Of a stretch of DNA of 64,000 nucleotides, positions 9,494 through 63,516 are shown piece by piece (position 1 is the first letter of the stretch; each line of letters begins with the position of its first letter). The stretch comes from Carpediemonas membranifera BICM (lineage: Eukaryota > Protista > Fornicata). Both the position numbers and the translations under genes were made by a program. Under the pieces are notes generated by a model that was not told where the DNA came from, made no database searches, and saw only the letters and a program-made list of their open reading frames with translations. The stretch is taken from NCBI GenBank assembly GCA_019828565.1, contig JAHDYR010000036.1:77820-141819 (forward strand), in the 5' to 3' direction.

Positions 9494-9783
9494 CACACCC
9501 TGGATGGCGCAGGTTTATTCATCTTTGCAGGTACCGTCCTGGAAACGATCTGGGCACAGTATGAGGGCATGAAGACCTATAGGGCGGGGTCAGGTTCAGA
9601 CTGGGTAACCTAATCACTCTCAAGTGTTCAAATCAGGGCAATCATAGAACTGACTGTCAATGGTCTCGGCTACAGGATGCATCTCGATGACGCCCGCTTT
9701 CTCATTTCCAGCCGATTTACGTGATTTGATTTATGTTGCATAGCACGGAGTCACGAAGAGTCAAGCGAAGAAACTTGCTCAAA

Positions 9784-14258: not shown

Positions 14259-14409
14259 CTTCGAAGAGTGCTGAGATAAACTGCGGAGTTGACCCAGGAG
14301 CCCCGCAGGGAGCGTATTCCCTGCCATATGCATGGGAAACCGACGCAGGACCGTCTACCATCCGTTATTTTATCGTGACCCTTTTCTGACAATACCTTCT
14401 GCCGCATTG

Positions 14410-22795: not shown

Positions 22796-25700
22796 CTACA
22801 GCTTGCTGGTGAAGTCATAAGTGTTGTCCAGCAGGAACCTGGCGATGACCTGATTCCTTCGAGCGTACTCCTCGGGGATCTGGTACAATAATGACCGTAA
22901 ACTGCGCTCCTCCCTTACCAACCTGAGGAAGATGGACCGGTTGAGCCGACGAACGAGGGAGGCGGCGTTCAGAACAAGACCGGCTGAAATGACTAGAAGG
23001 GCAACGCGAAGGACTATGATTCGGATCCGGAGGGCATAGTAGACGTCCGCAGCCTTCTTTCCGATGACGTCGTCAAACGCAAGGTCAATATCCTTGAGTA
23101 ATTCGAGACCAGAATTGCCGGTCCCGTTAAGAACTCCGCATTGGCTTGATAGATCAGGGTCGAGAAGGCCGAAAGCCGTCTTGAGTCGAGCTGCGTCTTG
23201 CAGCATGACAGCGGTGTTCGATGGGCGACCAAGCAGCGTTCTTGAGAGATACTGCAGGAAATAGTACATTCGAGGGCTATCACATTCTAAGATTGGAATT
23301 GATCGCATCATTCGGTGAGACATCCTGTGCATCGACTGGGGCGCGGCAGCGCTAGTGGGGTAATGAATCGTATCATATGCAGAGGCCACAGCGTATCTGT
23401 GATCTTGTAAGATTTGGACCGTCTGTGTCATCTTTTGGAATGCATCGCGTGTTGTGATCCCGAACGATGCTATCACAAGAAGTATAACAACCCACACAAA
23501 TAGCTGCCCTCCGACGGTCAGAACAAATCTCGTGATACTGTAAGTCAGCGTTGTACGAGCAACCTTCTGTCTGATTATGCGTGCCTTTCGAACGCTTGGC
23601 GGTGTTGCGACAGAAGGGAACAGAACTGCGATGGCAAGCCACAGCGCAGGTGCCAGCAGGGCCACGGATGCCGCCAACAGCTGGTGGGATCGGGCAGAGT
23701 CGAATTGTGACTGCGCAGTGGTCTCGAGACGGTCAGTGGCGATGGTGTACGCCGACATAAAGCTGTCCCAGGCCGCGTTGTACCGAGATTGGCCCAGAGA
23801 ATCGAACAGAGTGCCCCATGCCATGGACAGCTGAGTTTCAGATGGCCGGGCGAGGTCTGAAGCAGTGTCACTGTATGCTGCAGGCCGGTCGAACGTGGTG
23901 GCGGTGTGAACATAATCGGGCTCTGCAGTGTAGTTCCATACGACACCAGCGAACACGGGCATGGCTGCAGGGTCGACCCCGTGCGAACCCATGGCCATTC
24001 GCACGGCGATGGCGATCATATCCATGAGCGCCGACCAAGCTGAGCTCGATGAGGTGATGGCGGAGGCGATATCAGTGGATCCAAAGTCGATGAGTTCCGA
24101 TTGGACCGTCGAGGGGAGGGCGGGAATTGATTCGTTGACAATCTTGCTGAAAGTCTGCTCCAGATGCTGTCCGATATCAAGATCACCGGTCTGGATGAAT
24201 CTATAGATCTGATCGAATATCTTGTAGCCATCTAGCATCACCATGGTCTTGAACTGCATCAGACCAACTCTAGCGTCAACAAGGGCCGGGAGCGTGTCGC
24301 TCGTTCCGTCCATGAGGGTTATCGTGAGCGCTATTGTCAGTACGGCCGCTGTCACAATAAACAGGATGGTGACAGATACATAGCGGGCAAGGAGGGCGCC
24401 GTTGGAACGCACAACTGGCCACACTGTGGTGACAACCGCTGCAACCTTTTGGCGGAGGTCGGTCATTGAAACATCGGCTGAGTTCGTTGCCGTCAAGGAG
24501 AGGGCGGTGCGGTATGTCGCGTCGAAGTCTGTGTTGGCGAGGTTGCTATTGTCGGTGGCGGGGGCAAGCAGCTCATCCTCGAGGAACATGGCGTCGACAG
24601 TCTGATAGTCGAACAGCTGCCTCTTCCGCCTGTGGACTCTGATGCTCAGTATCATCGAGCCCACCATCATGACATAAACTGCACTCATAGCTATGAGAAT
24701 GAAGATGAACGAGCTGACGAGGGCGTAGGAGGCGTACCTAGCCCGGCGGTCCCATTCCATCATGTCATCCCGGATCGCATCGGTGGCGTCCCGCCCTGCT
24801 TGGCGCAGGTTCGATAGAACGTCCTTCTTGGCGCTGATGTACTGGCTGCTCCCAAGCACACTTGTCGAGATCGCCCAGGCTTGGGTGTGACTGAGTGCGC
24901 TGTCCGAGGCTGTGTCGGCGTACCAACCGTCGGGTCTGTCCGCGGCGTAGAGGGCGTCCTGTTCTTCCCAGTCAGCTTCTGCGGAGTAGTTGTACTTAAA
25001 GTGCGTCTTGTCACAAACCAGTGACGCATCAATGTCACCAGTTGTGGTCATGAGATACCACACAATATTCTCGTATCGTATCTGTCTCTTGGCCGCAGTG
25101 AGTGCTGTCGTCATCGGATCGACCTGCCGAGCAAAGACGTGCTCGAAGGAGCTTGCCTCCAAGGTGTCTAGAGCATCAGTGTGCTCTCTACTGGCAGCGA
25201 CAGAAGGGTAATACATAAACTTCACGGTGCTCTTGGTCATGGTGTAGCAGGCGGTCACAATCTCACCCACCTCATTGTCGATGACATTGATATCGGCGAC
25301 GTGTGATGCTGCTTGGCTCCGGCTGGTTGAAATGACATCCATCGCCACAAGACCGGCGATGAAGACGGCTAGCGCTGCAACGACTGTCGACACGACGAGA
25401 ATCGTAAAGACATGAATGTGGGTATGCAGCACCCGTATCCGACGCTCGATCGATGAAATCTGAGTCTGTATATCTGCCATATCTAGCTCGCTGGAGACGG
25501 TCCGCTCTGTTGCCAGCACTGGGAAGATCGAGGAGTGTCGAGTCTCGAAGTCATCCGAGTCGCGTGATTGAGCATCAGCGAATCTGATAGCTCTTGTTCT
25601 TGTGACAGGCGTGGGAGCAGGTACGGTGACCTGGGTGGCGATGGCCATCTTCCGGGCAAGGGTGGAGGGTAAGTGGAGATACATGTTGGCGGCTTCCTGT

Positions 25701-32759: not shown

Positions 32760-35700
32760 TCAACTCTGGCTGATCGGGAGCTTCGGCTGAACGGGAAGCA
32801 GACTTCTTGTCAGCCACCGAGGGTCGAAGCAGCTCCGAACCCGCATCGTCGGCGGCGGGGTGGCTCTGAATGACGGCATTGCAAGTCTAATGAAGACGTC
32901 GCGGTCGGCAATGCGCACACGGACGGGCATATCGATAATCTGAGGCAACGACGGGGGCAGAATCTCAACGTATCTGACTGAATCTGCGAGATACGACTCA
33001 GCGAATGAGTTATCAATCAGACACAGCTCTCTGAAGGTCTCCTGGGCGGCCGAGTCGTCCTCAAGGTGTGTGAGCATTAGGCCCTTGAGAAGGAGTGCAG
33101 ACGTGTTGTTTGCGAACGCCGGGCTTGATACAAGGAGATCCAGGGCATGGTTGTACTGCTCCAGCTGGAGGTATGCGACCATCTTGTTCAGGATGAGCTG
33201 TTGCGACGGTGCAGAGATGCCGTCTGCAGATGCTGCCAGTGCAATGGCCCTATCGTAGTCTTCCAATGCTGATTGGGCGTTCCCGATGCAGTGTTGCACG
33301 ACGCCCCTTACCGCGTGGACGAAGGCGAGGTGGGTGACGCGGCCGTCTGCCGCAGCCTTGACAGCGGCCTTGGTCGTCGTGTGCGTGGGGGAAAAGATGC
33401 CCGCATACGCGCCAGACGAATGAATTGCCGGAGACGGCAGGACTGACCCGACTGCGGGCACTGAGGTCCGTCTGGGTGATGGTTGCGGCGTGCTACCCTC
33501 TCTTGGCCTGTGGGGAGTGTCCTGTATCCGCTGCGCCCTGGATAGTACGTTTGACTCCGCTCCGACGAAGTGCCAGGGGTACGAGAGAGTTGGGTCGACG
33601 AGTTGGCCCGTCTGCACAGTCTTAACATGCGTGTCCTTCGCTGTCTCAGATGCCAGCAGGGAGTTGAGCTTCCTCAGAACCTGCAGGACGAACCTGTTGG
33701 TGTTCTTAGGATCCACGGGTCCAGCAAAGTCTAGGGGGCAGTCAAACAATGATGCAATCAATCCAGCGACGTCCCGGTCGAATAGGAAAGCCCTGGCTGC
33801 TGGGTGCTGCTGGACGACGGTGTTCATCGACGAACAGGCGGCCGTCCACTTGCCGAGCTCCAGCTGGATGCGGGCGACACATACGTAGGCCCTGACGCTG
33901 CGGGGATACTCTTTGATCGCCTCCTGGTATGACGCAAGGGCGTCTGTGAGCTTACCGCACCACCACTCAACGTCGGCCTTCTCACACAGACGCACAGCCT
34001 TCTCGCGGCCCTCGGGTGCATGCCTGACCGCCCTCGTGAGGTCGGCGATCGCAGTAGACAGTCGGCCGGCTGTGTGGTGGAGCCGTCCTCTCATCGACAG
34101 GACAAGCGATAGGGCTTCCTTGTCTGGCTCGAGGGAGGCTAGTCCGCGCACCGTTTGAGCGAACGGCGGCGGTGTCATCGTTGAGTAGGACGGCGTACAG
34201 GACACGCTCTCGGTCATCTCGGTGTCACTGTACAGCCGGTCCGTGGGTGGCTCCGAGATGTCCAGAGGCGTGTGACTGCTGTCGGGTGTTACTGAGGGCG
34301 CTAGCTCGCTGTACGTCCTGCTCTCAGGCCGGTCATACGCCAGCATCATCGCCTGGAGGTCCGCGTTGAGGTCTGCGATGTGGCTCAAGCTCGTATCAGC
34401 CCTCTGTGCCAAAGCTCTTGGTGTCAGCGCCTCTGCTACTGGGGTACGGGAGGCGGCGCGGGTCGAGCTCTGGCTCTTCTTGGCGGGCTCAAGCTGAGTG
34501 ATGATCTCTGTCAGCGACTCGATGGCAGAGTCGAGATCATCCCTCCCTATGAGATCGGCTAGGGCTGCGGCCACCAGATAGTCGGTCACTTTGCCCTGGC
34601 TGGTCGTAGCCGCGCTCTGGATGGACGCGGCGGCCTCCTTCCCCCGTCCCAGAGAAGCGAGGAGGAAGCCCTTGATGAAGTGCATCGTGTGCAGCTGCTT
34701 AGTGGGATCGGGGCCGGCGTCCGTGTATCTGTCCCAGTCCATTCGGGCCCGGTCAATCTCAACCTCGCACTTGGCGATGGCGGCGTCGACCTCAACCAGG
34801 GCCCCCTCCATTGTATCGGGCACAAGGTCTTGGTCACCAAAGACGACCGCCAGTGCCTTGTAAACATGCGGCTGTGGTTCGTTGGGCATGATGTTGCTGG
34901 CCTTCGCGAAGATGTTGTAGGCCTTGGCGTTCTTACCCTCATCCATCGCCTGAAGGCCGGCTGCCATCGCGTTGTTAAACTGCACGTGAGGCTGACCAGC
35001 CAGGCCGGGGTCGAGCTTTCCAGCCTGGGTGATGGATCTAATAGCAGCGGTAAGATTGTTGGATCGCATTGCAAGATATGATCTGCATAGATACGCCATT
35101 GCTGGTGCGTCAGGCCTCGACAGGAGCGAGTCAACGATGGTCTCAGCCCGACCGAGTCGCCCCACTTGCATGTGGCGCACAGCCTGTGCCAGCTGCACCT
35201 GGGCATGGGCCCGGGTGTCTGAGGCTGACCCGAGGATGCCCAGGGCTGCCTGGACTTTGCCCTGGTGGAGGGCACACTCGCCCAAGTCAGTCACAGCCTC
35301 AGGGAACCGGGAGCACTTTAGCGCAAGCAGGCCGCGCAGGTCCTCTTCGGCGCCAGCCCAGTCCCTTCGCCGCATGAGCAGTGAAGCTCTCAGGCGAAGC
35401 ACTACAGGGTCGTCGCAGACACCCTGGGGGTTGAATGTGGCGCTCAGCTCAGCTGACTTGGTGTATGCGGTAAATGCCTCGTCATCGTCATCTAGAGCTT
35501 CGAATGTCTCGCCCATGTGGCGACGGATATCGGCCACGCGAGAGTCGACCTCAAGAGCCTTACGATAATAGGTCAGCGCCTTCCTGAAGGCCCCTAGATT
35601 ATGACTTACTCGACCCAAACCGTCGAGTGCGAGGCATCTGAGGCTGTGTAGGAAAGCAGTGACATTGCCACCGTGGGCATTGGGGACAAAGATGGTCGCC

Positions 35701-39631: not shown

Positions 39632-42600
39632 ATGAGCAGGATCGCTACGATGATGCGTCTCCTGGTAGTGATAGTGCTTATCGTGTCCCTGATCGCTCCT
39701 GTTTCAGGCAAGGATGCTTCATACCACCTCACTGCTGCCAACAGCCACCCGAACGACGGATTTGGCTGGGCCATTGCCCTTGACGGCGAGGTCATGGTTG
39801 TTGGAGCCATTGGCACCGAGTCAGAGAAAGGCAGCGTATACGTCTTCACCAAGGACTTGGGCAAAATTGCGTGGAGCCAGCAAAAGCAGCACCACGCCAG
39901 CAACGGCCACGCGCAGGACAACTTCGGCAGTGCTGTCCGCCTAGACGATAGCTGGCTCATAGTTGGGGCCAGCCACTTCTCAAACGGCCAGGGCGCTGTG
40001 TACACGTTCGAGCGTGACGGGCTGAAATTCACCCAGACCCAGATGCTGCAAGCCAGCAACAAGGCTGACGCCGCCAACTTTGGCTATGCATTGGATCTGG
40101 AGGGGAACACCCTTCTTGTAGGCCAGCCCTACCTCGCCAAGACGACGGGGACGGGCACGTTTGACGCCTACGTCTTCACCCTCTCTGGCGGGGAATGGAG
40201 CAGTGAAGCCAAGCTGTCTGCACGCAGCGCCAGCCTCACCATGCAATATGGCCGGTCTGTGGCCCTCAGTGGCGATTTTGCTTTCATCGGCGCTCCCCGT
40301 AGCGGTAATAACGGTGCTGTCTACGTCTGGAACCATGACGGCAAGAGATGGTACAACAACCTACTGTGGCAGGGTTACGTCGCCGGCGAGCAGTTCGGCA
40401 CGGCTGTAGCGACCGACAATGCCCGGGTCGCCATCGGAGCGCCCTACTGCTCCCACAGCGGCAAGGGAGGAGACGGGTATGGTCTATATTTATAACCTGG
40501 CGAGCGGGTCATGGAAGGAGGAGCAACAGGTCTCGGCCCCCGACCCCAATGCGAAGGATCACTTCGGCAGCTCGGTTGGGGTGTTCGGACATTACCTGAC
40601 GATCGGAGCCCCGCTCGACGACGGCGACGCCACCGACAGCGGGGCTCTCTACCTCTACAAGCACGTCGGATCATGGGCATACAATCAGAAGATGGCGCCC
40701 ATCTCTTCGCTGGGGAACCAGGCCCACCTTGGCAACGCCGTCTTCATGGATAAGAACATGATCGTCGCCGGGGCCGTAGATGAGAGCACCGGGGCCGGAG
40801 CCGTCTACACTGACGAGGAGGTATGCCCACCGGGCACATTCGCCTCTGACGAGCAGACCTGTACCGCCTGCCCGACCGGCCAATATTCGGGTGAGGATGC
40901 GTTGGAATGCATCAAGGCATCGCCGGGGTATCACGTCACTGGTGATGACCACACGAAGCAACGGCCTTGTCATAACGGCAAATACCAGCCGAAGGAGGGC
41001 CAGAGCGCGTGTGTCGAGGCCTCGGCGGGATTCCATGTCCCCGACGACGGCAAGGCTCACGCCGCGCAGGACTATTGTGACAACGGAACGTGGCAGGCTA
41101 AGACCGGTCAGGCCAACTGTGACCCGGCGGACAAGGGGTATCACGTGCCGAAGGACAGTCGACCACACGCGACACAGGACCCGTGTGACATGGGCGGGAA
41201 GTACCAGGACGAGACTGGCAAGAGCGGCTGCAAGACCACCAGCGCTGGCTACTACCGTGCCGACGATACTGCTGCAAAGACGCCTCACCCGACGCAGCTG
41301 CCATGCTACAACGGCAAGTACCAGCCGAAGGAGGGCCAGAGCGAATGCGTGGTAGCCAGCAAGGGCTACTTCGTGCCCGACAAGGCCGAGGCCCATCCGA
41401 GCCAGACAGCCTGTGCCAAGGGCAAGCACCAGGACGCGGTCGGTCAGAGTCACTGTGTCACGTGTGAGTCGGGTTATTACACTAACGTCACCGCGACGGT
41501 CGACTGCAATCCTGCTACAGCCGGGTGGTATGTTTATGACGGCAACCACGGTGAGCAGGTGGTGTGTGACAGTGGCATGTACCAGCCTAAACCTGCACAG
41601 AGCAAGTGTCTCGAGACCCAGCCCGGGTACTATGTTCCTGACGACGGTGAACCCCACCTTCGTCCCATCCCGTGCCCAGACGGCCAGTACCAGGACAAGC
41701 CGCACGAGACGCGGTGTACCATGTGCCCCATCGGCCACTATGCCCCCACTACAGGCGAGGCCGACTGTCTGCCCGCCAGAGCCGGTTACTACGTGCCAGA
41801 CAGCGACCGAGCCGAGGAGCTGCCATGCGATGACGGAAAGTACCAGCCTAATGAAGGCCAGGACAGTTGCTTAACAGCGGACAAGGGTTGTTTCGTCCCA
41901 TCCGATGGGAAACCGCATGCAACCCAGGACTATTGTGACAACGGCACGTGGCAGGCCAAGACCGGTCAGGCCAACTGTGACCCGGCGGACAAGGGGTATC
42001 ACGTGCCGAAGGACAGTCGACCACACGCGACACAGGACCCGTGTGACATGGGCGGGAAGTACCAGGACGAGACTGGCAAGAGCGGCTGCAAGACCACCAG
42101 CGCTGGCTACTACCGTGCCGACGATACTGCTGCAAAGACGCCTCACCCGACGCAGCTGCCATGCTACAACGGCAAGTACCAGCCGAAGGAGGGCCAGAGC
42201 GCGTGTGTCGAGGCCTCGGCGGGATTCCATGTCCCCGACGACGGCAAGGCTCACGCCGCCCAGGACTATTGTGACAACGGAACGTGGCAGGCTAAGACCG
42301 GTCAGGCCAACTGTGACCCGGCGGACAAGGGGTATCACGTGCCGAAGGACAGTCGACCACACGCGACACAGGACCCGTGTGACATGGGCGGGAAGTACCA
42401 GGACGAGACTGGCAAGAGCGGCTGCAAGACCACCAGCGCTGGCTACAACCGTGCCGACGATACTGCTGCAAAGACGCCTCACCCGACGCAGCTGCCATGC
42501 TACAACGGCAAGTACCAGCCGAAGGAGGGCCAGAGCGAATGCGTGGTAGCCAGCAAGGGCTACTTCGTGCCCGACAAGGCCGAGGCCCATCCGAGCCAGA

Positions 42601-44516
42601 CAGCCTGTGCCAAGGGCAAGCACCAGGACGCGGTCGGTCAGAGTCACTGTGTCACGTGTGAGTCGGGTTATTACACTAACGTCACCGCGACGGTCGACTG
42701 CAATCCTGCTACAGCCGGGTGGTATGTGAAAGACGCTGATCACACGCAGCAGCTGGTGTGTGATGACGGCCACTATCAGCCAGAGTCAGCCAAGGCCGTC
42801 TGCATCGAGTCTGCCCCCGGCTACTACGTCCCTGACGACAACAAGCCCCACCTACAGCAGACACAATGCGCGCCAGGGTCCTTCCAACCGGACCGAGCCC
42901 AGCCGTCCTGCCCAACGTGCGGTGTCGGCAACTACACGACTGACCCGACACAGGTGGCCTGCAAGATGGCGGACCCTGGGTGGTTCGTGAGCGATTCAGA
43001 CCACACGCGAGAGCTCCCATGCTTCGATGGCAAGTATCAGCCCGACAGAATGCAGGACCGTTGTGTCATCGCGAGCAAGGGCCACTACGTCCCCAACGAC
43101 GGCCAACCCCACCCGGCCCAGACCCCGTGCGACCTGGGCTATCACCAGACCTACACCGGGATGAGTATGTGCGACCCTTGCCTGACCGGCCGCTACTCTG
43201 ACGAGACCGGCATGACCGACTGCAAGCTGTCAGATCCAGGGTACTACGTGCTCGACACTGACCACACGAGGCAACGGTGGTGCGTCAATGGCACGTATCA
43301 ACCGGCCGCGGAGACTGACGGCTGCTTAGATGCAGACGCTGGGTATCACGTCCCTAGAAACGCCTCGGCGGTCCAATATCCGTGTAATGCCGGCCAGTAC
43401 CAGCCTGAACACGGCAAGGAGTTCTGCCTCGACACGACGCCGGGCTACTTCGTCCCCAACGACGGGCAGCCCCACATCTACGCCCAGGCCTGCGATGGTG
43501 GCCGCTTCCAGCCCATTTCCCACGCCAGTAGCTGTGAGTTCTGCCCCGCCGAGTCCAGCACGCCCGACGACGACCAGCCGCACAAGTCGTGCGTGCGCTG
43601 GGTCCCCGTGGCGCCCAAGATCGACGCCAAGGACCGCATGGTGATCGAATCGTCCGTCATGAACGAGACTGTGGCGACGGTGGCGTTCGGCAAGGAGACC
43701 AACCCCTGCCAGCTGGTGCAGACGGCCGACGGCAACACTACGATCATCCCAGTTGTCACGGAGCCGACGGTCAAGGCCGGTACTTACCCGATGAAGCTGG
43801 CCTACTCCGACGGCACTGCCGCCACGATCAACGTCAACGTCCCGACGGATTACACCATCCCCGAGGCCCGGACGTCGCTCAAGGGCGTCGTCATGCAGAC
43901 CAGAGTCAACAGCACCATCTGCCCCGCCTCCATGACCGCCAGCCTGCTCGGGCCGACTGGGTTGACGGCCGCGGAGGTGGCCGACGACGGCACCGCGGTC
44001 TGTATTGCCCAGCAGGAGATCGACGCAGCCATCCTCACGGCCAAGCTGATCCCCGAGATGGAGCAGTCGCCGACGAACGTGTGTGCCCAGCTGCACGACG
44101 TGACGTTCAACTCGACTGAGCAGATCGGCATGCTCGCTGCAGGCGTGGAGCTCGCGCCCTATCTTGACGAGTTCGGCCGGCTCTGCGCCAGTACCGGGGC
44201 GGCCCATGTAGCCGTGAAGGAGGGAACTGACGCGAAGGAGGACGGCGACAACTACGTTTACGTCAGTCTCGACGGCCGCAGCTTCATCAGGGTCGTCATG
44301 GACAACTATGACCCTGCCTCAAGCCCCGACGCCGGCTCCAGCCCAGGCATGGCCGTCATCGTCGGTGGGTTCCTCCTCATCGGGGCATTCGTTGCTGTGT
44401 TCATTTCCGCCGTGGGCATGATAGCTGCGGTCGTTGTCTTTGGGGCGATCCATCAGCACCGGGCCCAGGACGGGATGAGGAAGCGGGTCAAGGTCAAGTA
44501 CGCTAGATTGGAGTAG
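39632..44516 (+). CDS. Surface protein: signal peptide, FG-GAP beta-propeller, Cys-rich (GCC2/GCC3-like) repeats, TM; +1 frameshift at about 40465
   Basis: FGWAIALDG/FGSAV/FGYAL...VGA repeats in ORF 39626-40495 continue in ORF 40419-44516. Deleting one G of GGG 40465-67 gives ...HSGKEETGMVYIY. CxxGxYQ repeats, then TM and a YARL tail. Confidence 0.85.
40983..42727 (+). repeat. Near-identical intragenic duplications in the Cys-rich stalk
   Basis: 40983-41533 matches 42177-42727 (offset 1194, about 2 mismatches); 41067-41342 matches 41925-42200 (offset 858). Confidence 0.9.
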
Positions 44517-46666: not shown

Positions 46667-48682
46667 ATGCAGAAGCAGAAGGCCAAGTACCTCAAGATCC
46701 TCTCTCAACAGTACCCGACGCTGGAAACGGCCGCATGCGAGGCTATCAACCTCCGCGCTATCCTCGGGCTGCCGAAGGGTACTGAGCAATATGTCAGTGA
46801 CCTGCATGGCGCGTTCTACTCGTTCGATCATACCCTTAGAAACGCCAGTGGCGTTGTACGTTTCAAGATCGAGCAGGCCTTCGGCATGACGCTTTCTGAG
46901 TCTGAGCGGGCAGAACTAGGCATGCTCGTCTACTACCCCGAGCAGAAGATGCGTCTCATATTCCAGGCGATGCCCGAGGTCGCTGCGAGAGATGACTGGC
47001 TCGCCGTCAACATCTACAGGCTCGTGATGGTAGCCCGACTGGCCGCATCGAAGTACACCCGGTCGAAGGTGACCAAGGCCCTCCCCAAGCAGTTCAGCTA
47101 CATGATCAACGAGCTCATCCATGAGCAAGAGACGGATCCCGACAAGCGAACCTACTATACCTCCATCATCCGGGAGGCCATTGACCTCGGTCAGGGCGCG
47201 TCTCTGCTCGTTGCCCTTTGCCGTCTGATCCAACGTCTGGCTGTGGACCACCTCCATGTTCTGGGCGATGTTTACGACCGCGGCTCCATGGCACACCGCA
47301 TCATGGACACCCTCATGCATTTCCACAGCATCGACGTCGCCTGGGGCAACCATGACATGCTGTGGATGGGTGCTGCGGCTGGGTCGCTCGCCTGCATCTG
47401 CAACGTTCTCAGAATCAGCCTCCGTTATAACAACCTCGACACGATCGAGAACGGGTACGGTATCAGCCTGCTTCCACTCGCGACCTTTGCTATGGAGACC
47501 TACGCCGACGACCCATGCGAGCAGTTCATCCCCAAGGGCGAGAAGGGCATGAACCAACGCCTCGTGTCACAGCTCCATAAGGCTATTGCGGTCATGCAGT
47601 TTAAGGTAGAGTCAACACTCATCGACCGCAACCCGTCGTTCGACATGGCAGACCGGCAGTCTCTCCGCATGGTCGACTGGGAGAACTACACGATCACCAT
47701 CGACGGGCAGACATATCCGCTCAAGGACAAGGTGTGGCCCACGGTCGACCCAGCCAACCCGACTGCCCTCAGCGAGGCCGAGATCAAGGTGCTGCAGCGG
47801 CTGCGGTACTCCTTCCAATCGTCCCCGGGTCTGCAGGAGCACATCCGGTTCCTATTCCAGGTGGGGTCCATCTATCTGGTCAAGAACGGTGACCTCCTCT
47901 TCCATGGCTGCATCCCAGTCAACGCGGATGGTACACTCATCCCGAACCGGATATTCGGAAAGCCCCTGGTCGGTGTGGCACAGCTTGACGCCTTCGACAA
48001 GGCTGCCCGCGATGGTTATTTCCTTCCCGAGATCACGCCCATTGAGCTGGCAGCCCATGAAGGCGACCAAAGCACGTCCGGACATGCCCGTAAGCAGTTT
48101 GGCCAGGACGTCGCTTGGTATCTTTGGGCTGGTCCTGTCTCGCCCCTGTTTGGCCGTAGCAAAATGGCCACCTTCGAGCGGTACTTCATTGAAGATAAGG
48201 CTCAGTGGAAGGAGCCGGGCAACGCGTACTACAAGCTGAGAGAAGACGAGGAGTTCGTCAAGAAGATCCTGGCTGAGTTCGATGCGGACGTCACCCACGG
48301 GCACATCATCAACGGGCACGTCCCTGTGAGAGCCAAGGACGGTGAGATGCCGGTCAAGGCCAACGGCCGACTCATTGCCATTGATGGGGGCTACTGCGAG
48401 GCATATCAGGGGGAGACGGGGACGGCGGGGTACACGCTCATCAACGACTCCCATGGCCTCAAGCTAGCCATTCACAGACCATTCTCTTCGAGACACCACG
48501 CTGTCGACACGAACGAGGACATGGTCACTGAGCTTAAGATCATTGAGAAGTGGAGCCACAGGCTGAGGGTGGCTGAGACCGACACGGGCATCAGGCTCAA
48601 GGAGAGGGTCCAGGATCTGAAGGACCTCATGGACGCCTATAGGGCTGGTGATCTGGCTGAGGGGACGTATTTTAATGGATGA
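46667..48682 (+). CDS. fbp: Fructose-1,6-bisphosphatase class III (Firmicute-type)
   Basis: INLRAILGLPKGTEQYVSDLHG, KYTRSKV, GDVYDRG, WGNHD, SPLFGRSKMATFERYF, NGHVPV, IDGG. Confidence 0.93.
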   Translation: MQKQKAKYLKILSQQYPTLETAACEAINLRAILGLPKGTEQYVSDLHGAFYSFDHTLRNASGVVRFKIEQAFGMTLSESERAELGMLVYYPEQKMRLIFQAMPEVAARDDWLAVNIYRLVMVARLAASKYTRSKVTKALPKQFSYMINELIHEQETDPDKRTYYTSIIREAIDLGQGASLLVALCRLIQRLAVDHLHVLGDVYDRGSMAHRIMDTLMHFHSIDVAWGNHDMLWMGAAAGSLACICNVLRISLRYNNLDTIENGYGISLLPLATFAMETYADDPCEQFIPKGEKGMNQRLVSQLHKAIAVMQFKVESTLIDRNPSFDMADRQSLRMVDWENYTITIDGQTYPLKDKVWPTVDPANPTALSEAEIKVLQRLRYSFQSSPGLQEHIRFLFQVGSIYLVKNGDLLFHGCIPVNADGTLIPNRIFGKPLVGVAQLDAFDKAARDGYFLPEITPIELAAHEGDQSTSGHARKQFGQDVAWYLWAGPVSPLFGRSKMATFERYFIEDKAQWKEPGNAYYKLREDEEFVKKILAEFDADVTHGHIINGHVPVRAKDGEMPVKANGRLIAIDGGYCEAYQGETGTAGYTLINDSHGLKLAIHRPFSSRHHAVDTNEDMVTELKIIEKWSHRLRVAETDTGIRLKERVQDLKDLMDAYRAGDLAEGTYFNG

Positions 48683-56200: not shown

Positions 56201-58553
56201 GATACTTGCCCGCATCGCAGGGAAGCTGGGCCGACTTGTTGCTGGAGTCGACGTAGTAGCCAGCAGAGGCCAAGGTGCAGCTGTCAACGCCACCAGCACT
56301 GTAGGTACCGGTCGCACAGGCCACCTGGCTCTGTCTGTTCTCTGCTGGACGGTAGCCGGCGTCTGCCTTCTTACAGGTAGCCTGCCCGGTCTCGTCCTGG
56401 TAGTCACCCACGCCGTCACAGTCGATCTGGGCGATCTGGGCGCCACCAGTGGGGACCTTGTGCCCCTTGCTGGCTGTGAGACACTCTGTTTGACCAGAGT
56501 TCGGCTGGTACTTGCCGTTGTTACACGCCACCTGCTCTGATCTGTCAGTCGTGCTGACGTAGTATCCGGCCTGGGCCCTGGTGCATGAGTCCAGCTCGCC
56601 AGGAGAGTAGTAGCCGTCCGAGCAACTCACCTGGCTCTGTCTGTTCTCTGCTGGACGGTAGCCGGCGTCTGCCTTCTTACAGGTAGCCTGCCCGGTCTCG
56701 TCCTGGTAGTCACCCACGCCGTTACATGACGTCTGAACTGTCTGGGCGCCGTTTGCAGGGACGTAGTGACCCTTTGCCGCGGTGAGGCATGCCGTCTGCC
56801 CTGCGTCAGGCTGGTATTTGCCGTCGTTGCACATGTATGGCTTCGACAGGTCACTGGACTTGGCGTAGTTACCGGCCGATACCTGCGTGCACGAGGCTGA
56901 CTGAGCTGGGGCGTAATAACCCGACGCACAGGCCGACTGACTCGTCTGGGGTGTGGTAGCGGGGGCGTAGTACCCGACTCCAGAGATCAGACAGGAGGAC
57001 TGGCCGGAGTTGGGCTGGTAGTGGCCGTTCCAGCACTCCCGCTGCTTCGTCTTGTCAGAACTAAGAACGTAGTACCCGGCCTGGGCCTGCGTGCACGAGT
57101 CGCAGTTACCCTCACTGTAGTAGCCGGTGGAGCACACCGACTGGCCTGTCCGGCCGCTGTTGGCATAGTAACCCGGGGACACGCTGTCACAGCTGGTCTG
57201 GGCGGTGCTGTCCTGGTAAGTGCCACTGCCGCATGACGAGTACGTGCTCACTGGCCCCGACATCGTTGAGACGTATCCGCCGGCTGGGGCGGCCGTGCAA
57301 TCAGTGGCGGAGGTAGAGGCCGAGTAGTACCCAGTGTTGCAGGGGTAGTTGGAGCTGGTGGTCAGACAGACCGACCCTGCTGACACGGAGCAGGCCATGC
57401 TGATTCTGTGTGCCAACCCCGCCTGCGTCCCCTCAGGCGACGACCCCGGTCCGCCTATGAGGAGCGAGGAGCCGTACACTGACAGGGCCGCGCCGTAGTT
57501 GTTGTTGGCAGTCGATGTGTATGAGAAGTACTGTCTGTGTCCCCACGCCCCCTTGATCTCAGTCCAGTAGTGAACGCGGCCATTGTCGGAGTTCTCTCCA
57601 GGGGCACCACCGTACACAATGTTGCTGTAGACGCCGACAGCGGTGCCGAGTTTCCCAGACGTTGACGCGGTGGGGGAAGTGAATCGCTGCTCTTGCGACC
57701 ACGTGGTTCCTGAGCGGGTATACGAGTACAGAGCGCCGTCGCTGCTGTATGTGGCGGAATAATAGGGGGCACCGACAACGACGCGGGCTGAGTGAATGGC
57801 GACGGAGGTCCCAAAGGCGTCTCCTGCATTGGTACTGCTGCCCGTGAGCTTGGCCTGCTGAGACCACGACGACGATGATCCTGTGAACACGTAGGCAGCG
57901 CCTTTGTCAGAGGACTCCCCGGGTGCGCCGACCACCAGGTATGAGCTGATGATGGCGACACTCTGGCCGAAGTAATCATTCTCAGCGGCATCGCTGGCCT
58001 GGACCATCGTCTGGTACGTCCATGACGCCCCTCCGCCGGTGTAAATGTAGACAGCCCCCGTGGCACTGTCGTAGCCATACGCACCGACCGCCAGCGTAGA
58101 CGTGGTCATCGCTAGAGCTGCGCCGAAGTTCGCAAAGACAGGATTAGATGGTGGCGTCAGTTTCTGCTGCTGACTGAAGACGTGCGTCGATGTGTACGAG
58201 AAAATGTACACAGCACCAGCAATAGTGTCACCCTTGCGTGGAGCACCCACCGCAAGGACGGAGCTCGAAGGCATCGCCACTGCTGTTCCAAACTTGTCGC
58301 CCTCCTCGATGTCAGAGGAGATGAGGACGTCGTAAGTGCTCGAGGACCACACAGCATATGCTCTTCCAGCAGCTGTGCCGTAGGTAGCGTCGCCAGGAGC
58401 ACCAACAACACCAACACCGGTGCTTCCATGAGCAACAGATGTGCCATAAAGGTCGTAGCTGTTCACATTGGACGGAAGCCAATCATATGTCGCACCAGAG
58501 AAGGCCCCGTTCGTCGTGGTGACAAAAATCGAAAGAAATATTACCAGTATCAT
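53214..58553 (-). CDS. Second FG-GAP + Cys-rich-repeat type I surface protein
   Basis: Signal peptide MILVIFLSIFV; about seven FG-GAP repeats (FGTAVA...VGAP); many CxxGxY repeats; TM followed by Cys-rich CLACIITTCVSCTCAAVC. Exact 95-bp internal duplication 56322-56416/56628-56722. Confidence 0.88.
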   Translation of the reverse strand: MILVIFLSIFVTTTNGAFSGATYDWLPSNVNSYDLYGTSVAHGSTGVGVVGAPGDATYGTAAGRAYAVWSSSTYDVLISSDIEEGDKFGTAVAMPSSSVLAVGAPRKGDTIAGAVYIFSYTSTHVFSQQQKLTPPSNPVFANFGAALAMTTSTLAVGAYGYDSATGAVYIYTGGGASWTYQTMVQASDAAENDYFGQSVAIISSYLVVGAPGESSDKGAAYVFTGSSSSWSQQAKLTGSSTNAGDAFGTSVAIHSARVVVGAPYYSATYSSDGALYSYTRSGTTWSQEQRFTSPTASTSGKLGTAVGVYSNIVYGGAPGENSDNGRVHYWTEIKGAWGHRQYFSYTSTANNNYGAALSVYGSSLLIGGPGSSPEGTQAGLAHRISMACSVSAGSVCLTTSSNYPCNTGYYSASTSATDCTAAPAGGYVSTMSGPVSTYSSCGSGTYQDSTAQTSCDSVSPGYYANSGRTGQSVCSTGYYSEGNCDSCTQAQAGYYVLSSDKTKQRECWNGHYQPNSGQSSCLISGVGYYAPATTPQTSQSACASGYYAPAQSASCTQVSAGNYAKSSDLSKPYMCNDGKYQPDAGQTACLTAAKGHYVPANGAQTVQTSCNGVGDYQDETGQATCKKADAGYRPAENRQSQVSCSDGYYSPGELDSCTRAQAGYYVSTTDRSEQVACNNGKYQPNSGQTECLTASKGHKVPTGGAQIAQIDCDGVGDYQDETGQATCKKADAGYRPAENRQSQVACATGTYSAGGVDSCTLASAGYYVDSSNKSAQLPCDAGKYQPYTGQSACLTASPGYFVPSAASIAQLPCNGTGQYQDESGASSCKTAAAGYFANDDHTAQVACATGYYSEGGANACTASDPGHYVLSSNKTKQWGCTVLGTYSLGAASGCTTVAKGYRALTNFTGIVYCDDVGGYQDETGQTTCKTVAEGYYPSADRTAAVLCATGYYSYGAADACTQAELGYYALANHTDHVLCDGTGEYQDEVGQTGCRTTEAGYYPTADRTDQQHCEDGYYSPTDGCETCTAADPAYYVSTSDRTAQIRCTVAGTYSLGGAGSATGCTEAEPGYYALCNNTDHVLCDGTGQYQDETGQTTCKVTAAGYYSSGDRATQLPCATGFYSYGRADSCTEAELGYYALVNHTAHIPCNSGQFQDETGQLECKNVSTPGQYTPVSGAWAEPLSCPDGFDVTEDFTGCSRFLDYITGYTESVSIDLAEFVNTTTDLVISNIGIATVPPQCSLASTVLTCTEPVDTVLTVSFEAGGTVFSGSAVLQLQGLTEPAGLVRSHVVGRVNGNRDYDLGYWATPLGTACPLTYSLTQAPDWATVNDTALILAPTGPQPASNVTLLTVTNCQNVTMTKVLTLTYMAIDQSNVIAGKARASNSTYHSIIFDTMNDMAVTNVSVSGQTGVTVRNSTSGEAIYVPIGSTVNGTTSMTVTLSDGTTETLEVAIPATTVRYNATGAVTISNDTMMARTPAVNGSCAASLEASYLGEMNVTTVTLEDGTIYCVTTETVSANMLATMTYAVYEDSSTVPIANGSTPVTPEHLCVGILDTVTNSTAGFTDSSRYLIDLNGVTQSTVIESSRVCVDASFVSTDAAIVPVTGDGAVSLSLLFDEASVFSTEFVVEPMVVDEFPWLTVIGVALAIFVTIALCLACIITTCVSCTCAAVCAKSTHIFFKKARIWLASPPAPQGVPASFRYPVARPQSTMADSYYAPSAYSRTSTATTFTGMSTAPAYLRQQPGTFSQSMLSSSSSLSAPTSKTWRVFDGPLRDSSSRL

Positions 58554-58812
58554 GCCAAATGATCCATGTGGAGCAAAATGTGAGGTAACGGATTGGCGCA
58601 TCGCCAATAAAGTCGTTGGAGAAACGTCGACCGTGCAGAATATGGCAAGATTTTGAAGACCCATGATTCCGGGGCAGGCTTGGGCGATGCAAAGGCAGAA
58701 AAAGTTCTTGAAAGTCTGGTTGCTTGAAGATCTGATTTGAGCGATAATTTCCTGTACACATAGCCGGTATCTTGCCCGATTTTCCCGACCGCTTGATGAG
58801 ATGCGCACCGTC

Positions 58813-58865
58813 TGTGGTATGGATAGAACAGCTAGCGAAAGAGGTTTAATCAATTGATTGGGACA
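58813..58865 (-). repeat. 3' LTR (53 bp)
   Basis: + strand TGTGGTATGGATAGAACAGCTAGCGAAAGAGGTTTAATCAATTGATTGGGACA; contains the pol stop codon. Confidence 0.93.
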
Positions 58866-61800
58866 CTACCCCTCTCCTCGAGGTGACGGCGCACGACGGA
58901 CGTGCGGGCGGCGTCAGAGTTGGGACCCTCCCACGTGGCCTTAGCCTCAGGGAAGCCGAGCCACTTAATGAGGAGGTCGCCAGTCTCGTCGTCGACCTCT
59001 AGGACTTTCTCGACGTAATACTCCTCGTCGTCGGTAGCCGCGATGCGCAACAGTTCGGCGTCGCTGAGGGGGCCTTGGCAGATGCGGATTAACTGGCTCA
59101 GGTGGACCCGGCGGCTCTTGCCGCCAGTGAGCGGCGTGATCTCCGCTGCGTAACCGTCGGCGGCTGTGATGCGGAATGGGCCGCGGTGGCCGTGTAGCTT
59201 CGTGGGGCTCTCGTTCTTACGAAGGACCAGAGTGCCCGGCTCGATCGGGGGCGTCGGCTCTGCGGTCCTTGTCATTGCCTGCTGGCGGTTGAGGGCCTGG
59301 TCGGCGAGGATCTGGAGGTGCTCGGTGAGCGCGTCGATGTAGGAGGCTATGTCGTCCAGGGGAGTATGAACTCTACCCTCCTCCTTGGGTGCGATCGTGA
59401 AGTCGCGAGCGGAGGCATGCTTGCCCATCAAGAGAGCAATGGGTTCGACGCCGGTGACGGAGTGGACCGTAGTGTTCAGGATGTACTGGACGTATGGGAC
59501 CACGGAGGCCCAGGCGTCGTAACGGTCAAACATCAGACAGAGCACACGTAAGTGTCGCTTGACTTCCTGGTTGCGTCTCTCGGCCAGGCCGTTTGACTGA
59601 GGGTGGAAAGGGATTGTCCGGTGGTACGTGACCTGCAAGCGATCAAGGAAAGCTTCTATCATCCGATTGCGGTACTCGGGGCCGTTGTCCGAAAAGGAAC
59701 TCGCGAGGCACACCGTAGCGTCCGATGATGGACCAAAGTGCCAGCCCGACCGTCGTCGCGTTGTTGGAAGCTGTGGGGATGAGCTCCGTGAAGCGGGTAA
59801 ACATGTCGGTTGCCACCACGATGTATCTGAAACCCTCGGAGTCGACAGGGAAAGGACCCATGGTGTCTACAGCGATGGTCTGGAAGGGTCGGTCGCGCAG
59901 AGAAGACTGCGTTGTGGTCTTAATGAAAGCGGAGAGGCGTGCCTTAGCGCAGTACACGCAGGTTGACACGACTGCGTGCACGTCGGAGTGGAGGCCTGGC
60001 CAATCGTGCCCAAGCTGGCGGACGTTCCTGATGGTGGCCTGCTCGCCCTCGTGGTATCGGTGAGCTTCTTGCACGATCTTGCGCTTGGCGTCTTCGTCGA
60101 GCTCGGCCTCTGAGACGTTGTTGACCTGCGTGACTGTGGCCTGCGGGTTGTATCGACTGAGTGCGTCGGCCAGTGTGTTCTGCGCGCCTGCGATGTGTCT
60201 GATGACGAACTCGAACTCTTGGATCATAAGCAGCCAGCGGAGGTGCTTACGGTTTTCCTGGCCAGCCTTGGAGTGCAGGTAGACCAAGTTGCGGTGGTCC
60301 GTCCAGATCGTCAGGTCCTGGTGGACTCTAAAGATGGGCGAGAGGTCAGGCCGAGTGAGGCAGTAGATGATCGCGAACAGCTCCTGGTCGTACGTGCACC
60401 AACGCGACTGTGTGTCGTTGAAGACCTTTGAGAAGAATGACACGACGCGCCATGTGTTGTCCGAGTCAAGCTGCAGTAAGACACCGCCGATGCCTTCGAG
60501 AGAGGCGTCGGTCTCGAGGCGCCAGGGCCTGCTCTGGTCCGGATGGGCGAGGACCTCTTCGTCTGTCACGGCCTGCTTGAGCTGATCAAACAGAGCCTGA
60601 AGCGTGTCGTCCCAGTCGTTGAAGGTGTAGGGTGGGACCTTGCTGACCAAGGCCTGGAGCGGCTTGAGGCGTGTCTGGCAGTCGGGGATATAGTCACTGA
60701 GGTATGTGAACATACCGATGATCATGCGTAGGTCCTTGACCGAGTGAGGTGCGGCGAGGTCCTGCATGGATCTGACACGAGTAGGGCTCATGCGGCGGCC
60801 CTTGCCATCGACGATATCGCCGAGGATCTCGATAGACGTCGCCCCGAAGACACACTTGTCGCCGCGGAGGCGGACGTTGCGTTCCTCTGCGATACAGAGT
60901 AGGCGGTCGACGTGGTCTAGAAGCTCCTGAGGTGTCTTGGCTCGACCAAAGATGTCGTCGATGTAGTTCTTCGTACCGTCGGCGCGCACAGGGGCAAGGA
61001 TTGCCTGGATGGCCCGCTGGAACTGTGACGGTAGGTTACGAAGACCAAAGGGTGCAAAGTTGTACTCTTTGAACCGGCCTGGCAGCGTTATAGCGGTGAG
61101 GTACTTGTGGTCTTCGCGTACTGGCATTTGATGAAAGCCTGACCGGAGGTCGGCGAAGAAGTACTTGGCACAGATGAAGTCGTTGGTGAAGGTGAGGATA
61201 TCTGCGAGGGGGAACCTGTCTGGTGTAGTTACCGAGTTAAGCTCGCGGTAGTCGGCGCAAAGTCGTAACTCGCTTGACTTCTTCACTACGATGACGGCGG
61301 CGGATGCCACGTGGCTGTAGGAATCGCGTACGATGCCCTGTCTGTCCATGTCGTCGATAATCTCGTGCACTCTTTCGGCGGTGGATTCCGTGAGCGGTCG
61401 AGGGGCATGGTTGGGTAGGGGTGCGCCTGGCACGATGTCAATCGTTGCGGCGCCGATCTGGGCGCCGTCAGGGTGCAGCTCGCCGAATACCGGTGCGTGC
61501 CGGCGGATGACATCAGCCATCTCGGCTTTGAGCGGGAAGTCGCTTGCGATGCGTGTGCCAAGTGGGCCCGCGTCGTCGCTGACGATGTTGTTGACTGCGT
61601 GGAAGTCATCGGTCTGGTCGTCGGGGAGGCCTTCGTCCTCGCCGTCGTGAACTTTGCGGGCGGAGGCGAAGCATGATGCCCTCGTCGGACATGAGGCCTA
61701 AGAACCACAATATATCCGAGCCGATGAGGACCTTATCGGCCCTGCCGCTGATGACGTGCAGGGGCCAATCGATGATCGTTCGGCGGTCGCCCAAGCGGTC

Positions 61801-63270
61801 CGCGACCAGCGTTGTCTCGAAGGTGCCGTGTTGCTGGAGACCTTGGTCGTCAGGGCCCGTCAGCTGGACCATGTCGGGGCCCCTCCTGCCAAACTGGGCG
61901 AGTGCGTTGGCGAGGTCCAGCGAGATGGTGGACACTACGGAGCCAGGGTCGACCGTCGCTGAGATAAGCGTGTCACCTATCGTCACTGGAATCCGGAGAA
62001 GCCGGCCCGGCGAGTAAGCGTGCTCGGCATGCTCTACGTTCTGAACGCTGCCTTGTTGGGGCTTGTTGGGGGGTGTCGGTGTGAATGGTGTGGCCTGCTT
62101 GGGGTTCTGCCTGAACTGCCAAGGACCCTTCGACGTCGATGGTTGCTGGGGCTGCTGTGGTTGTCCAGCGGCCTGTCGTTGGGGACCAACTGCCTGCGGC
62201 TGGCGTGACTGGTTCTGCTGGGCGGCTGAGGCTTGGTGTGGTGTGCGTTGAGAGGCCTGGCCCTGGCGGGGATCTTGAGGTTGGCGGCCCGCCGGTGTGG
62301 CTCTGTTAGCCTGACTCTGGCGCTTCAGCAGCCGGCACTCTTCAGTAGAGTGGCCGCCGGGACCGTGGACGCGGCAGGTCTTGCGGCCGTTGCCCGGTGT
62401 AGCGGGGACCTTGGCGCCTGCCATGGGACCGGAGGTCCTCTGGCAGAAGGACCAAGGCGTGACGATCGTCCCATCGGAGTTAGTTGGCAAAGCCAGGATG
62501 CGGTGCTGGACGTCATCGATGGTGGTGGCGCCGTCGGCGAAATCCTCGAAGGCGAGGGCGGCTTCGGTGACGTCAAAACCGCGGGTCAGCACGCGGAAAA
62601 GCGTGGATATCAGCCTCTTCTCGGTGAGGGGCGTGTAACCGTTTTCTTCTGTCGGGAACTTGGGGTTCAGCTGGCGACAGTGCTTGCCGAAAGCTAGGAA
62701 CATCTTCTGCATAGAGGTGATGTCTCCACCTGTGAGCGTGGTCCTTTCCAGGATCGCCGCCGCGCGAGCGCTGGGTTAGCCCGCTGGGCGGGTGTCAGCT
62801 CGAAGTACGCGGTGTAGGTGAGCAAGAGGTCCGCCCGCTCGCGGAGCTCCTCCCTCGAGAGGCGCTCTGAGGCGTTGGTCGAGGTGTCTGGGGCCGTCGG
62901 TGGCGGACTGACCGCCTTGAGGGCTGCGGTGATGAAGGCCTGCTTCAGCTCGTCTGAAGCGATCGAGAGCCGCTTGGGTGTCTATATCCTTGAGCTTGGC
63001 CAGGAGAGCGCTGAGCTCCTCGGCCGATTTGTCGTCGTCGTTCTTCTCGGGTTCATTCTGCTCGGAAGGCTTATGAATGGGAGGACGGATCTCTGTCTCA
63101 AAGAAGCATTGGAAATCCTCGAATGTTGGGAATCTCGTTGTCGGGATGAACGCCGCGCGGATTTCGGCTAGTTTCTCGCTCCCGAGGAAAAAGAGGATGC
63201 TAGACGGCTGCTTTTTGCTTGCAACATGAAGACGATACTCGTCTAAACGGCTGTTGCTGACTAAAACCAT
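58850..63270 (-). CDS. Gag-Pol polyprotein of about 1470 aa, broken by four single-base indels (about 62977, 62765, 61665, 59693)
   Basis: Gag knuckle CRVHGPGGHSTEEC; protease VDPGS; RT LCADYRELN, DLRSGFHQ, PFGLRN, YIDD; RNase H TDAS, ELFAI, TDH, ADALSR; IN H-H-CxxC, DTMGP, SDNG, NGLAER; chromodomain YYVEKVL...IKWLGFPEAKATWE. Confidence 0.9.
58866..58879 (-). promoter_or_regulatory. Polypurine tract (PPT)
   Basis: Minus-strand GAGGAGAGGGGTAG abuts the 3' LTR. Confidence 0.85.
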
Positions 63271-63282
63271 GACAGTGATCAC

Positions 63283-63335
63283 TGTGGTATGGATAGAACA
63301 GCTAGCGAAAGAGGTTTAATCAATTGATTGGGACA
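63283..63335 (-). repeat. 5' LTR (53 bp)
   Basis: Identical to 58813-58865 and followed on the + strand by the TSD CCGTC. Confidence 0.93.
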
Positions 63336-63516
63336 CCGTCTACCACCGCCGCATACATCCCAGGTATTCGAACGAGCTAGCAGATGACGTGGACCTCCTG
63401 TCTGTAGGGATGGGCGACCACTTTATGTGATGTGAAGTGCACCTTTGCAAGACGGACGAATTCACCAGAACCGACATCGGATCGGTGGTTGCGAAAGCGG
63501 ATCATCAAAAGTTCCC

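Follow-up and report, generated by a model that had tools for sequence, protein, structure and literature searches.

Chromoviruses (Metaviridae such as Tf1 and Maggy, with Ty3 as the solved reference) encode a reverse transcriptase (RT), RNase H and an integrase, the latter with zinc and core domains and a C-terminal chromodomain, and they share TG..CA ends, a target-site duplication (TSD) of 5 bp and a polypurine tract. Their long terminal repeats (LTRs) measure hundreds of base pairs. LTR length is usually thought to be bounded below by the promoter together with the R (repeated) and U5 (unique 5′) segments, and annotation tools embed a minimum of 100 bp, which is the default of LTRharvest. 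In this study, we describe an insertion with the same organization at positions 58808–63340 of a stretch of 64,000 nucleotides from the protist Carpediemonas membranifera BICM (contig JAHDYR010000036.1 of assembly GCA_019828565.1, forward-strand positions 77,820–141,819; henceforth the window, to whose numbering coordinates refer), whose LTRs are in contrast only 53 bp long, roughly half of that minimum. We read it as a frameshifted member of a young and autonomous Ty3/gypsy family that carries a chromodomain and genuine 53-bp LTRs, with a compressed U3-R-U5 organization (U3, unique 3′ segment) and priming from a palindrome, and assign a probability of roughly 0.8 to this reading.

The Carpediemonas element also departs from chromoviruses in the absence of untranslated regions, its ATG being located 12 nt past the LTR and its stop inside the 3′ LTR, and in the palindrome that replaces the site for a transfer RNA (tRNA). 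Complementarity of the Tf1 type to the 5′ end of the RNA is not evident from the sequence. The assignment as chromovirus refers to domain content, and the phylogenetic tree described below is composed of database relatives.

Short LTRs have been described in other groups. The mag element of Bombyx mori, a member of Ty3/gypsy, reportedly contains LTRs of about 77 bp and a tRNA primer site, which we treat as a lead rather than a test. FRetro64, an autonomous Ty1/copia element of rice relatives, carries LTRs of 76 and 90 bp; the derivatives SMART/FRetro129 consist of 292 bp with LTRs of 85 bp (PMC3281118). These elements resemble the one described here in their very short LTRs, TGT..ACA ends, 5-bp TSD and the occurrence of solo LTRs despite the short repeats, but they belong to another superfamily and host kingdom and their LTRs are about 1.5 times longer, whereas the Carpediemonas element combines autonomy and young age with a coding frame that overlaps the LTR. 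Tiny LTRs of less than 100 bp are also a feature of TRIMs (short for terminal-repeat retrotransposons in miniature), which are missed at default settings of LTR finders (PMC10741241); the default of LTR_Finder is 100 bp in that study, in line with the minimum near this value quoted in a preliminary description of the locus. TRIMs and SMART are non-coding and non-autonomous, in contrast to the Carpediemonas family, where 4 of 14 full-length copies contain a complete gag-pol frame. Finally, in the fungal GalEa copia elements the primer-binding site is replaced by a palindromic sequence, termed 'conserved hairpin site', of which the last A of the 5′ LTR is a part (PMC5445492). The short perfect palindrome at the expected tRNA site of the Carpediemonas element likewise includes this last A. 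GalEa elements differ by being copia rather than gypsy, by LTRs that are not miniature and by a second complementary sequence located 12–41 bp downstream, of which none was seen in the first ~80 nt of the Carpediemonas element.

Termini of the insertion and its copies across the genome

The two direct repeats (58813–58865 and 63283–63335) are 100% identical, start with TGT and end with ACA, and are directly flanked on their outer sides by the pentamer CCGTC, with the element spanning 4,524 bp. If the flanks are counted, the identity extends to 55 bp, because a flanking C on each side matches by chance. All long frames between the repeats are found on the minus strand, which defines the repeat at 63283–63335 as the 5′ LTR and the one at 58813–58865 as the 3′ LTR. 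Each repeat contains a 12-bp palindrome, AATCAATTGATT (58848–58859 and 63318–63329). The coordinates and identity of the TGT...ACA repeats and the exact CCGTC duplication claimed in the preliminary description were reproduced in our analysis, as was the perfect palindrome within the LTR. In contrast, its placement of the polypurine tract inside the 3′ copy of the repeat was incorrect, as the tract, in the sense of the minus strand, resides inside the element where it adjoins the 3′ LTR. Its designation as a complete element holds for the structure, but not for the reading frame, which is broken into four pieces. The features of the insertion are as follows:

58808–58812, no strand: CCGTC, target-site duplication flanking the element at its 3′ end; same pentamer at 63336–63340
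58813–58865, minus: 3′ LTR, 53 bp, sense TGT...ACA; holds the last 4 gag-pol codons and the TGA stop (58850–58852), with TTAAAC directly after
58866–58879, minus: polypurine tract, sense GAGGAGAGGGGTAG, adjoining the 3′ LTR within the coding sequence; the same tract precedes every 3′ LTR, and relatives have a similar tract ending in ..GGGTAG
58928–59014, minus: chromodomain at the integrase C-terminus (Pfam Chromo 17.7 bits, sub-threshold; HP1/CBX5 chromodomains, E=1.2e-5)
58850–59713, minus: gag-pol frame piece 4, end of the integrase core and chromodomain (open reading frames and Pfam)
59643–61520, minus: gag-pol frame piece 3, RT, RNase H, integrase zinc domain and start of the integrase core (Pfam; match to Ty3 Gag-Pol)
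Within piece 3, minus (Pfam): RT ~60819–61283; RNase H ~60213–60614; integrase zinc domain ~59937–60098; start of the integrase core ~59682–59894
61606–62712, minus: gag-pol frame piece 2, gag/protease region (no Pfam match)
62776–63270, minus: gag-pol frame piece 1, N-terminal gag, ATG at 63268–63270, 12 nt after the 5′ LTR (open reading frames)
63272–63285, minus: 14-bp perfect palindrome ACAGTGATCACTGT, covering the final 3 nt of the 5′ LTR together with the expected tRNA primer-binding position (sequence)
63283–63335, minus: 5′ LTR, 53 bp, of the same sequence as the 3′ LTR (repeat comparison)
63336–63340, no strand: CCGTC, target-site duplication flanking the element at its 5′ end (pentamer match)

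The genome searched for further copies comprises 24,237,836 bases in 69 contigs; the published assembly of C. membranifera was obtained from long reads and contains 24.2 Mb in 69 contigs with a GC content of 57.1% (PMC8516963, Table 1). At a tolerance of up to one mismatch, the 53-mer matches at 39 sites, compared to none for its reversed control, which is well beyond the level of chance. The family inventory consists of 14 full-length copies of 4523–4529 bp, 4 split copies and 1 isolated LTR, latter of which carries its own duplication and is thus a solo LTR, indicating that recombination between LTRs is still possible on 53 bp of homology (n=1). Perfect 5-bp duplications, which are mutually different, surround the same 53-bp ends in all 19 testable insertions. 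The split copies were cut by later insertions or deletions and their outer pentamers still match. In one of them (G000:C6:1045809-1092850; L023, L015), both halves carry the duplication AGGGC at a distance of 42 kb, and either a large block has therefore entered the copy or the region was rearranged. Separately, a lone 130-bp piece of the gag region (L026, G000:C54:854498-854627) is 100% identical to the family and has no LTR nearby.

The boundaries are further defined by three uninterrupted paralogous sites, in each of which the duplicated pentamer is present once. Two of these sites originate from a pair of insertions (L004 and L011), 35 bp from each other in copies of a different repeat, each of which provides the empty site of the other, and the third from a local duplication in which one unit contains the insertion and the second unit is empty. 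The repeat targeted by L004 and L011 is itself retroelement-like and contains a region resembling an integrase C-terminus, pointing to nesting among retroelements. No shared motif was found in the 70-nt flanks of 14 insertions, several of which reside within other repeats. Integration thus proceeds with 5-bp duplications and without a target motif.

These properties bear on the concern that the 53-bp repeats are remnants, either because the element is a deleted or non-autonomous derivative of one with long LTRs or because the assembly has collapsed. Such an origin would agree with the prior expectation on LTR length and with nothing beyond it. Longer repeats are found in none of the copies of the family, and the reading as a deleted derivative, which the preliminary description had named as a potential refutation of its own proposal, therefore fails. 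With 19 independent junction pairs, an assembly collapse is ruled out, and the published assembly is, as mentioned, a long-read assembly of 69 contigs (PMC8516963). Considering also the individual TSDs of all 19 insertions, the exact boundaries at empty sites, the full gag-pol frame in four copies and the LTRs of 57–128 bp in relatives from another assembly, we regard this explanation as scarcely credible. The earlier claim that the repeats constitute the true termini of an integrase-mediated insertion is thus borne out by the TSDs and empty sites, and the proposed search for other copies and solo LTRs with different TSDs but the same ends has provided the described inventory.

Coding capacity and LTR length in relatives

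A single uninterrupted gag-pol frame of 1,473 codons is present in 4 of the 14 full-length copies. It starts at sense position 66, 12 nt past the 5′ LTR, and its stop coincides with positions 14–16 of the 3′ LTR, so that coding sequence, including the translated purine tract, makes up about 98% of the element. Frames were read from natural copies as they stand, with no consensus and no repair. Within the protein, Pfam detects RT (RVT_1, 663–818), RNase H (887–1020) and integrase (1059–1224) in this sequence, including the zinc and core domains of the integrase in the order found in Ty3/gypsy elements. The active site of the RT reads YIDD, and among solved proteins the best match is the Gag-Pol protein of Ty3 (E=1.9e-70). 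The chromodomain falls below the curated cut-off of Pfam Chromo, but is matched by solved HP1/CBX5 chromodomains at E=1.2e-5. The 14 copies diverge by a mean of 9 substitutions (0.2%) and a few single-base insertions or deletions. The family is thus young and autonomous.

The frame is broken in 10 of the 14 full-length copies, including the one in the window, whose breaks are located near sense positions 367–565, 1681, 2183 and 3641, some of them being common to other copies. Within ~320 bp (61137–61453, sense 1883–2199), the window copy also carries clustered substitutions and a deletion of 4–5 nt that are private to it, with the remainder being nearly identical to the family. This patch could be explained by a diverged copy that took part in recombination or template switching, or reflect a local problem of the assembly.

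The closest proteins are encoded in assembly GCA_002919055.1, which probably belongs to C. frisia, and share 41–60% identity over the region from RT to integrase. The LTRs of these relatives span 78, 77, 78, 57, 90 and 128 bp, compared to ~100 bp in an element from one sequencing run and ~298 bp in a more distant metagenomic element. A quick tree of 41 RT-integrase rows was computed by maximum likelihood; it was restricted to database relatives, and partial-coverage or fused rows were excluded from it (e.g. P0013, P0024, P0026 and P0027). In this tree, the 53-bp family and the families of GCA_002919055.1 form a clade of 13 rows with a Shimodaira–Hasegawa-like approximate likelihood ratio test (SH-aLRT) value of 99. 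The element with 100-bp LTRs is the sister of this clade and the one with 298-bp LTRs is located in the other half of the tree. One member of the group from GCA_002919055.1, the 128-bp-LTR relative (L069:4368-10362), has a length of ~6 kb and contains between pol and the 3′ LTR an extra antisense open reading frame of 412 residues (8892–10130) with no Pfam match on record.

Members of the clade share a common layout. Their purine tract ends in ..GTAG or ..AGGA and their LTRs have TGT..CACA ends, and in every relative examined a perfect palindrome of 12–16 bp overlaps the last 1–3 nt of the 5′ LTR. Three relatives from the clade resemble the 53-bp family in placing the ATG 12–18 nt past the LTR and the stop 14–20 nt into the 3′ LTR, and in a fourth the ATG follows directly after the LTR and the stop is found 11 nt ahead of the 3′ LTR. 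In seven LTRs of the clade, the distance from the last TAAA box to the 3′ end amounts to 32, 33, 47, 39, 39, 34 and 33 nt, whereas the segment preceding the box measures, in the same order, 17, 20, 26, 35, 35, 52 and 91 nt. Since the tail is kept while the upstream part varies between 17 and 91 nt, the change in length is almost entirely confined to the 5′ (U3) side. As far as can be judged from these sequences, the short LTR is a trait of the lineage, and the miniaturized lineage postulated in the preliminary description is thus recovered as a single clade of shared layout with relatives' LTRs of 57–128 bp.

Candidate signals for expression and priming

The described comparison suggests how 53 bp might suffice. 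We propose that the LTR would be a stripped-down version of U3-R-U5, in which about 10 nt at each end would be reserved for the integrase, an AT-rich box at LTR positions 7–22 (consisting of the palindrome and TGA-TTAAAC) would act as polyadenylation (poly(A)) signal and probably also as initiation signal, and the last ~32 nt would contain R and U5. In the entire clade, the conserved tail of 32–47 nt would correspond to R and U5 and the TAAA box to the core signal. The small size of the LTR may be possible because the expression signals of the host appear themselves to be tiny, in which case the LTR could dispense with all sequence that precedes the core box.

Candidates for such host signals were found in the window. 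The 8-nt sequence GCAGTTTA occurs 8 times, about nine-fold above the expected 0.86 and at a count reached in none of 100 shuffles (example sites being 34976–34983, 24675–24682 and 14277–14284 on the minus strand and 47596–47603 on the plus strand). This sequence or close variants are located 0–41 nt upstream of the ATG in six long open reading frames, which makes it a candidate for the core promoter or initiator of the host. Similarly, 7 of 22 host stop codons are followed within 50 nt by GTAAA, a motif present in 1.8% of random windows (p=8e-8), and 15 of the 22 by the looser class NTAAA. Located at or just after the stop, both are candidates for the poly(A) signal of the host. Diplomonads use compact promoters and poly(A) signals, and it is by comparison with these that the expression signals of the host look Giardia-like in their compactness. 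The TGA-TTAAAC of the element fits the host 3′ signal, and the LTRs of sister elements contain palindromic boxes resembling GCAGGTTTA or TATAAA in sense orientation at the same position. The ends of Logan contigs were considered as potential transcript ends and rejected, as their distance into the LTR equals exactly k-1=30 nt, which marks them as breaks of the assembly.

The same region has to be considered with respect to a different origin of the transcript, in which the LTR would provide only integrase sites, a short R and a poly(A) signal, and transcription would start from an internal promoter downstream or by read-through from the host. Non-LTR elements, which use an internal promoter downstream, offer an analogy. 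Such an arrangement would account for an LTR of 53 bp that lacks a host-type promoter motif on its sense strand and that contains just 17 nt upstream of the TAAA box, and one of the insertions indeed adjoins a host promoter motif. However, the absence of a common motif in the flanks of 14 insertions, several of them inside other repeats, implies that a dependence on host read-through would render most copies inactive from the moment of insertion, which is at odds with a young family that has multiplied. Together with the sense-oriented boxes at the equivalent position of sister LTRs, this leads us to consider a promoter outside of the LTR as unlikely.

The start of minus-strand synthesis poses a separate question. 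We did not find a tRNA primer-binding site after the 5′ LTR, where the 14-bp palindrome ACAGTGATCACTGT takes its place, although tRNA genes were not scanned genome-wide. The complement of the 12-mer following the LTR matches at 23 positions of the genome, 19 of them at copies of the element and 4 elsewhere, which is about the number expected by chance and leaves a tRNA primer unsupported. Within the LTR, the only complement of the post-LTR sequence is the palindrome itself. It is thus the palindrome at the edge of the LTR, rather than a tRNA, that may prime the minus strand, as we infer from sequence.

The palindrome could also hint at a more radical departure, where the element would contain no usable R and its ends would be regenerated in a non-canonical way that depends on the palindrome, for example from paired genomic RNAs or read-through transcripts. 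The conservation of a 12–16-bp palindrome at the 5′ LTR edge in every relative examined and the failure to detect a tRNA-type site would be compatible with such a route, and if the AT-rich box were a TATA box at −30, initiation would be placed at the end of the LTR. In contrast, the location of the host promoter motif 0–41 nt from the ATG favours initiation near the box, which would leave room for an R of roughly 10–25 nt. In retroviruses, an R of ~12–20 nt is enough for minus-strand transfer. Since the classical scheme also accommodates the polypurine tract and the identity of paired LTRs, we consider the loss of R very improbable.

Returning to the young autonomous family with a compressed U3-R-U5 and palindrome priming, several observations weigh against this reading. 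The subdivision of the 53 bp into U3, R and U5, including the sites of transcription start and polyadenylation, is one that we infer from sequence features. The promoter assignment is weak, since GCAGTTTA was not found on the sense strand of the 53-bp LTR, its closest match being AGGTTTA on the antisense strand. The broken frames in 10 of 14 copies could in some cases originate from assembly errors at short homopolymers, but could also reflect real decay, and the comparison of LTR lengths within C. membranifera covers the 53-bp family only. A claim to the shortest known LTR is in turn weakened by the phrase-based, non-exhaustive nature of the literature search, in which no LTRs of 53 bp or less were found.

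Limits on LTR length and features near the insertion

In the same limited search, the shortest published cases were from plants and insects and measured at least 76 bp. The family is an extreme new variant, namely an autonomous Ty3/gypsy family with a chromodomain and LTRs of 53 bp, within a Carpediemonas clade spanning 53–128 bp. Its LTR might even be the smallest functional one of an autonomous retroelement and near-minimal, consisting of two integrase-binding ends, one AT-rich box for initiation and polyadenylation and an R of ~10–25 nt, with a frame that overlaps the LTR and self-priming by the palindrome, a proposal that we hold tentatively and at slightly unfavourable odds. If true, the size of an LTR would be set by the promoter architecture of the host rather than by the mechanism of replication.

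A young multi-copy family with some intact frames and 53-bp LTRs places the lower bound on LTR length much lower in a host with compact signals, and provides a natural minimal system to define which LTR nucleotides are required for integration and strand transfer and which for initiation and polyadenylation. The family also serves as a warning that LTR elements are under-annotated in protist genomes; retrotransposons are unmentioned in the genome paper of C. membranifera (PMC8516963).

In the window, the element is located ~150–260 bp upstream (58553–58812) of a gene for an FG-GAP/ephrin-receptor-like surface protein of 1,800 residues, which is found in the same orientation (minus strand, ending at 53214), and read-through from the 3′ LTR into this gene is conceivable. 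Further away, an open reading frame of 1,365 codons (40419–44516) contains a tandem duplication (40983–42727) that is nearly perfect and repeats with a period of 1,194 bp.

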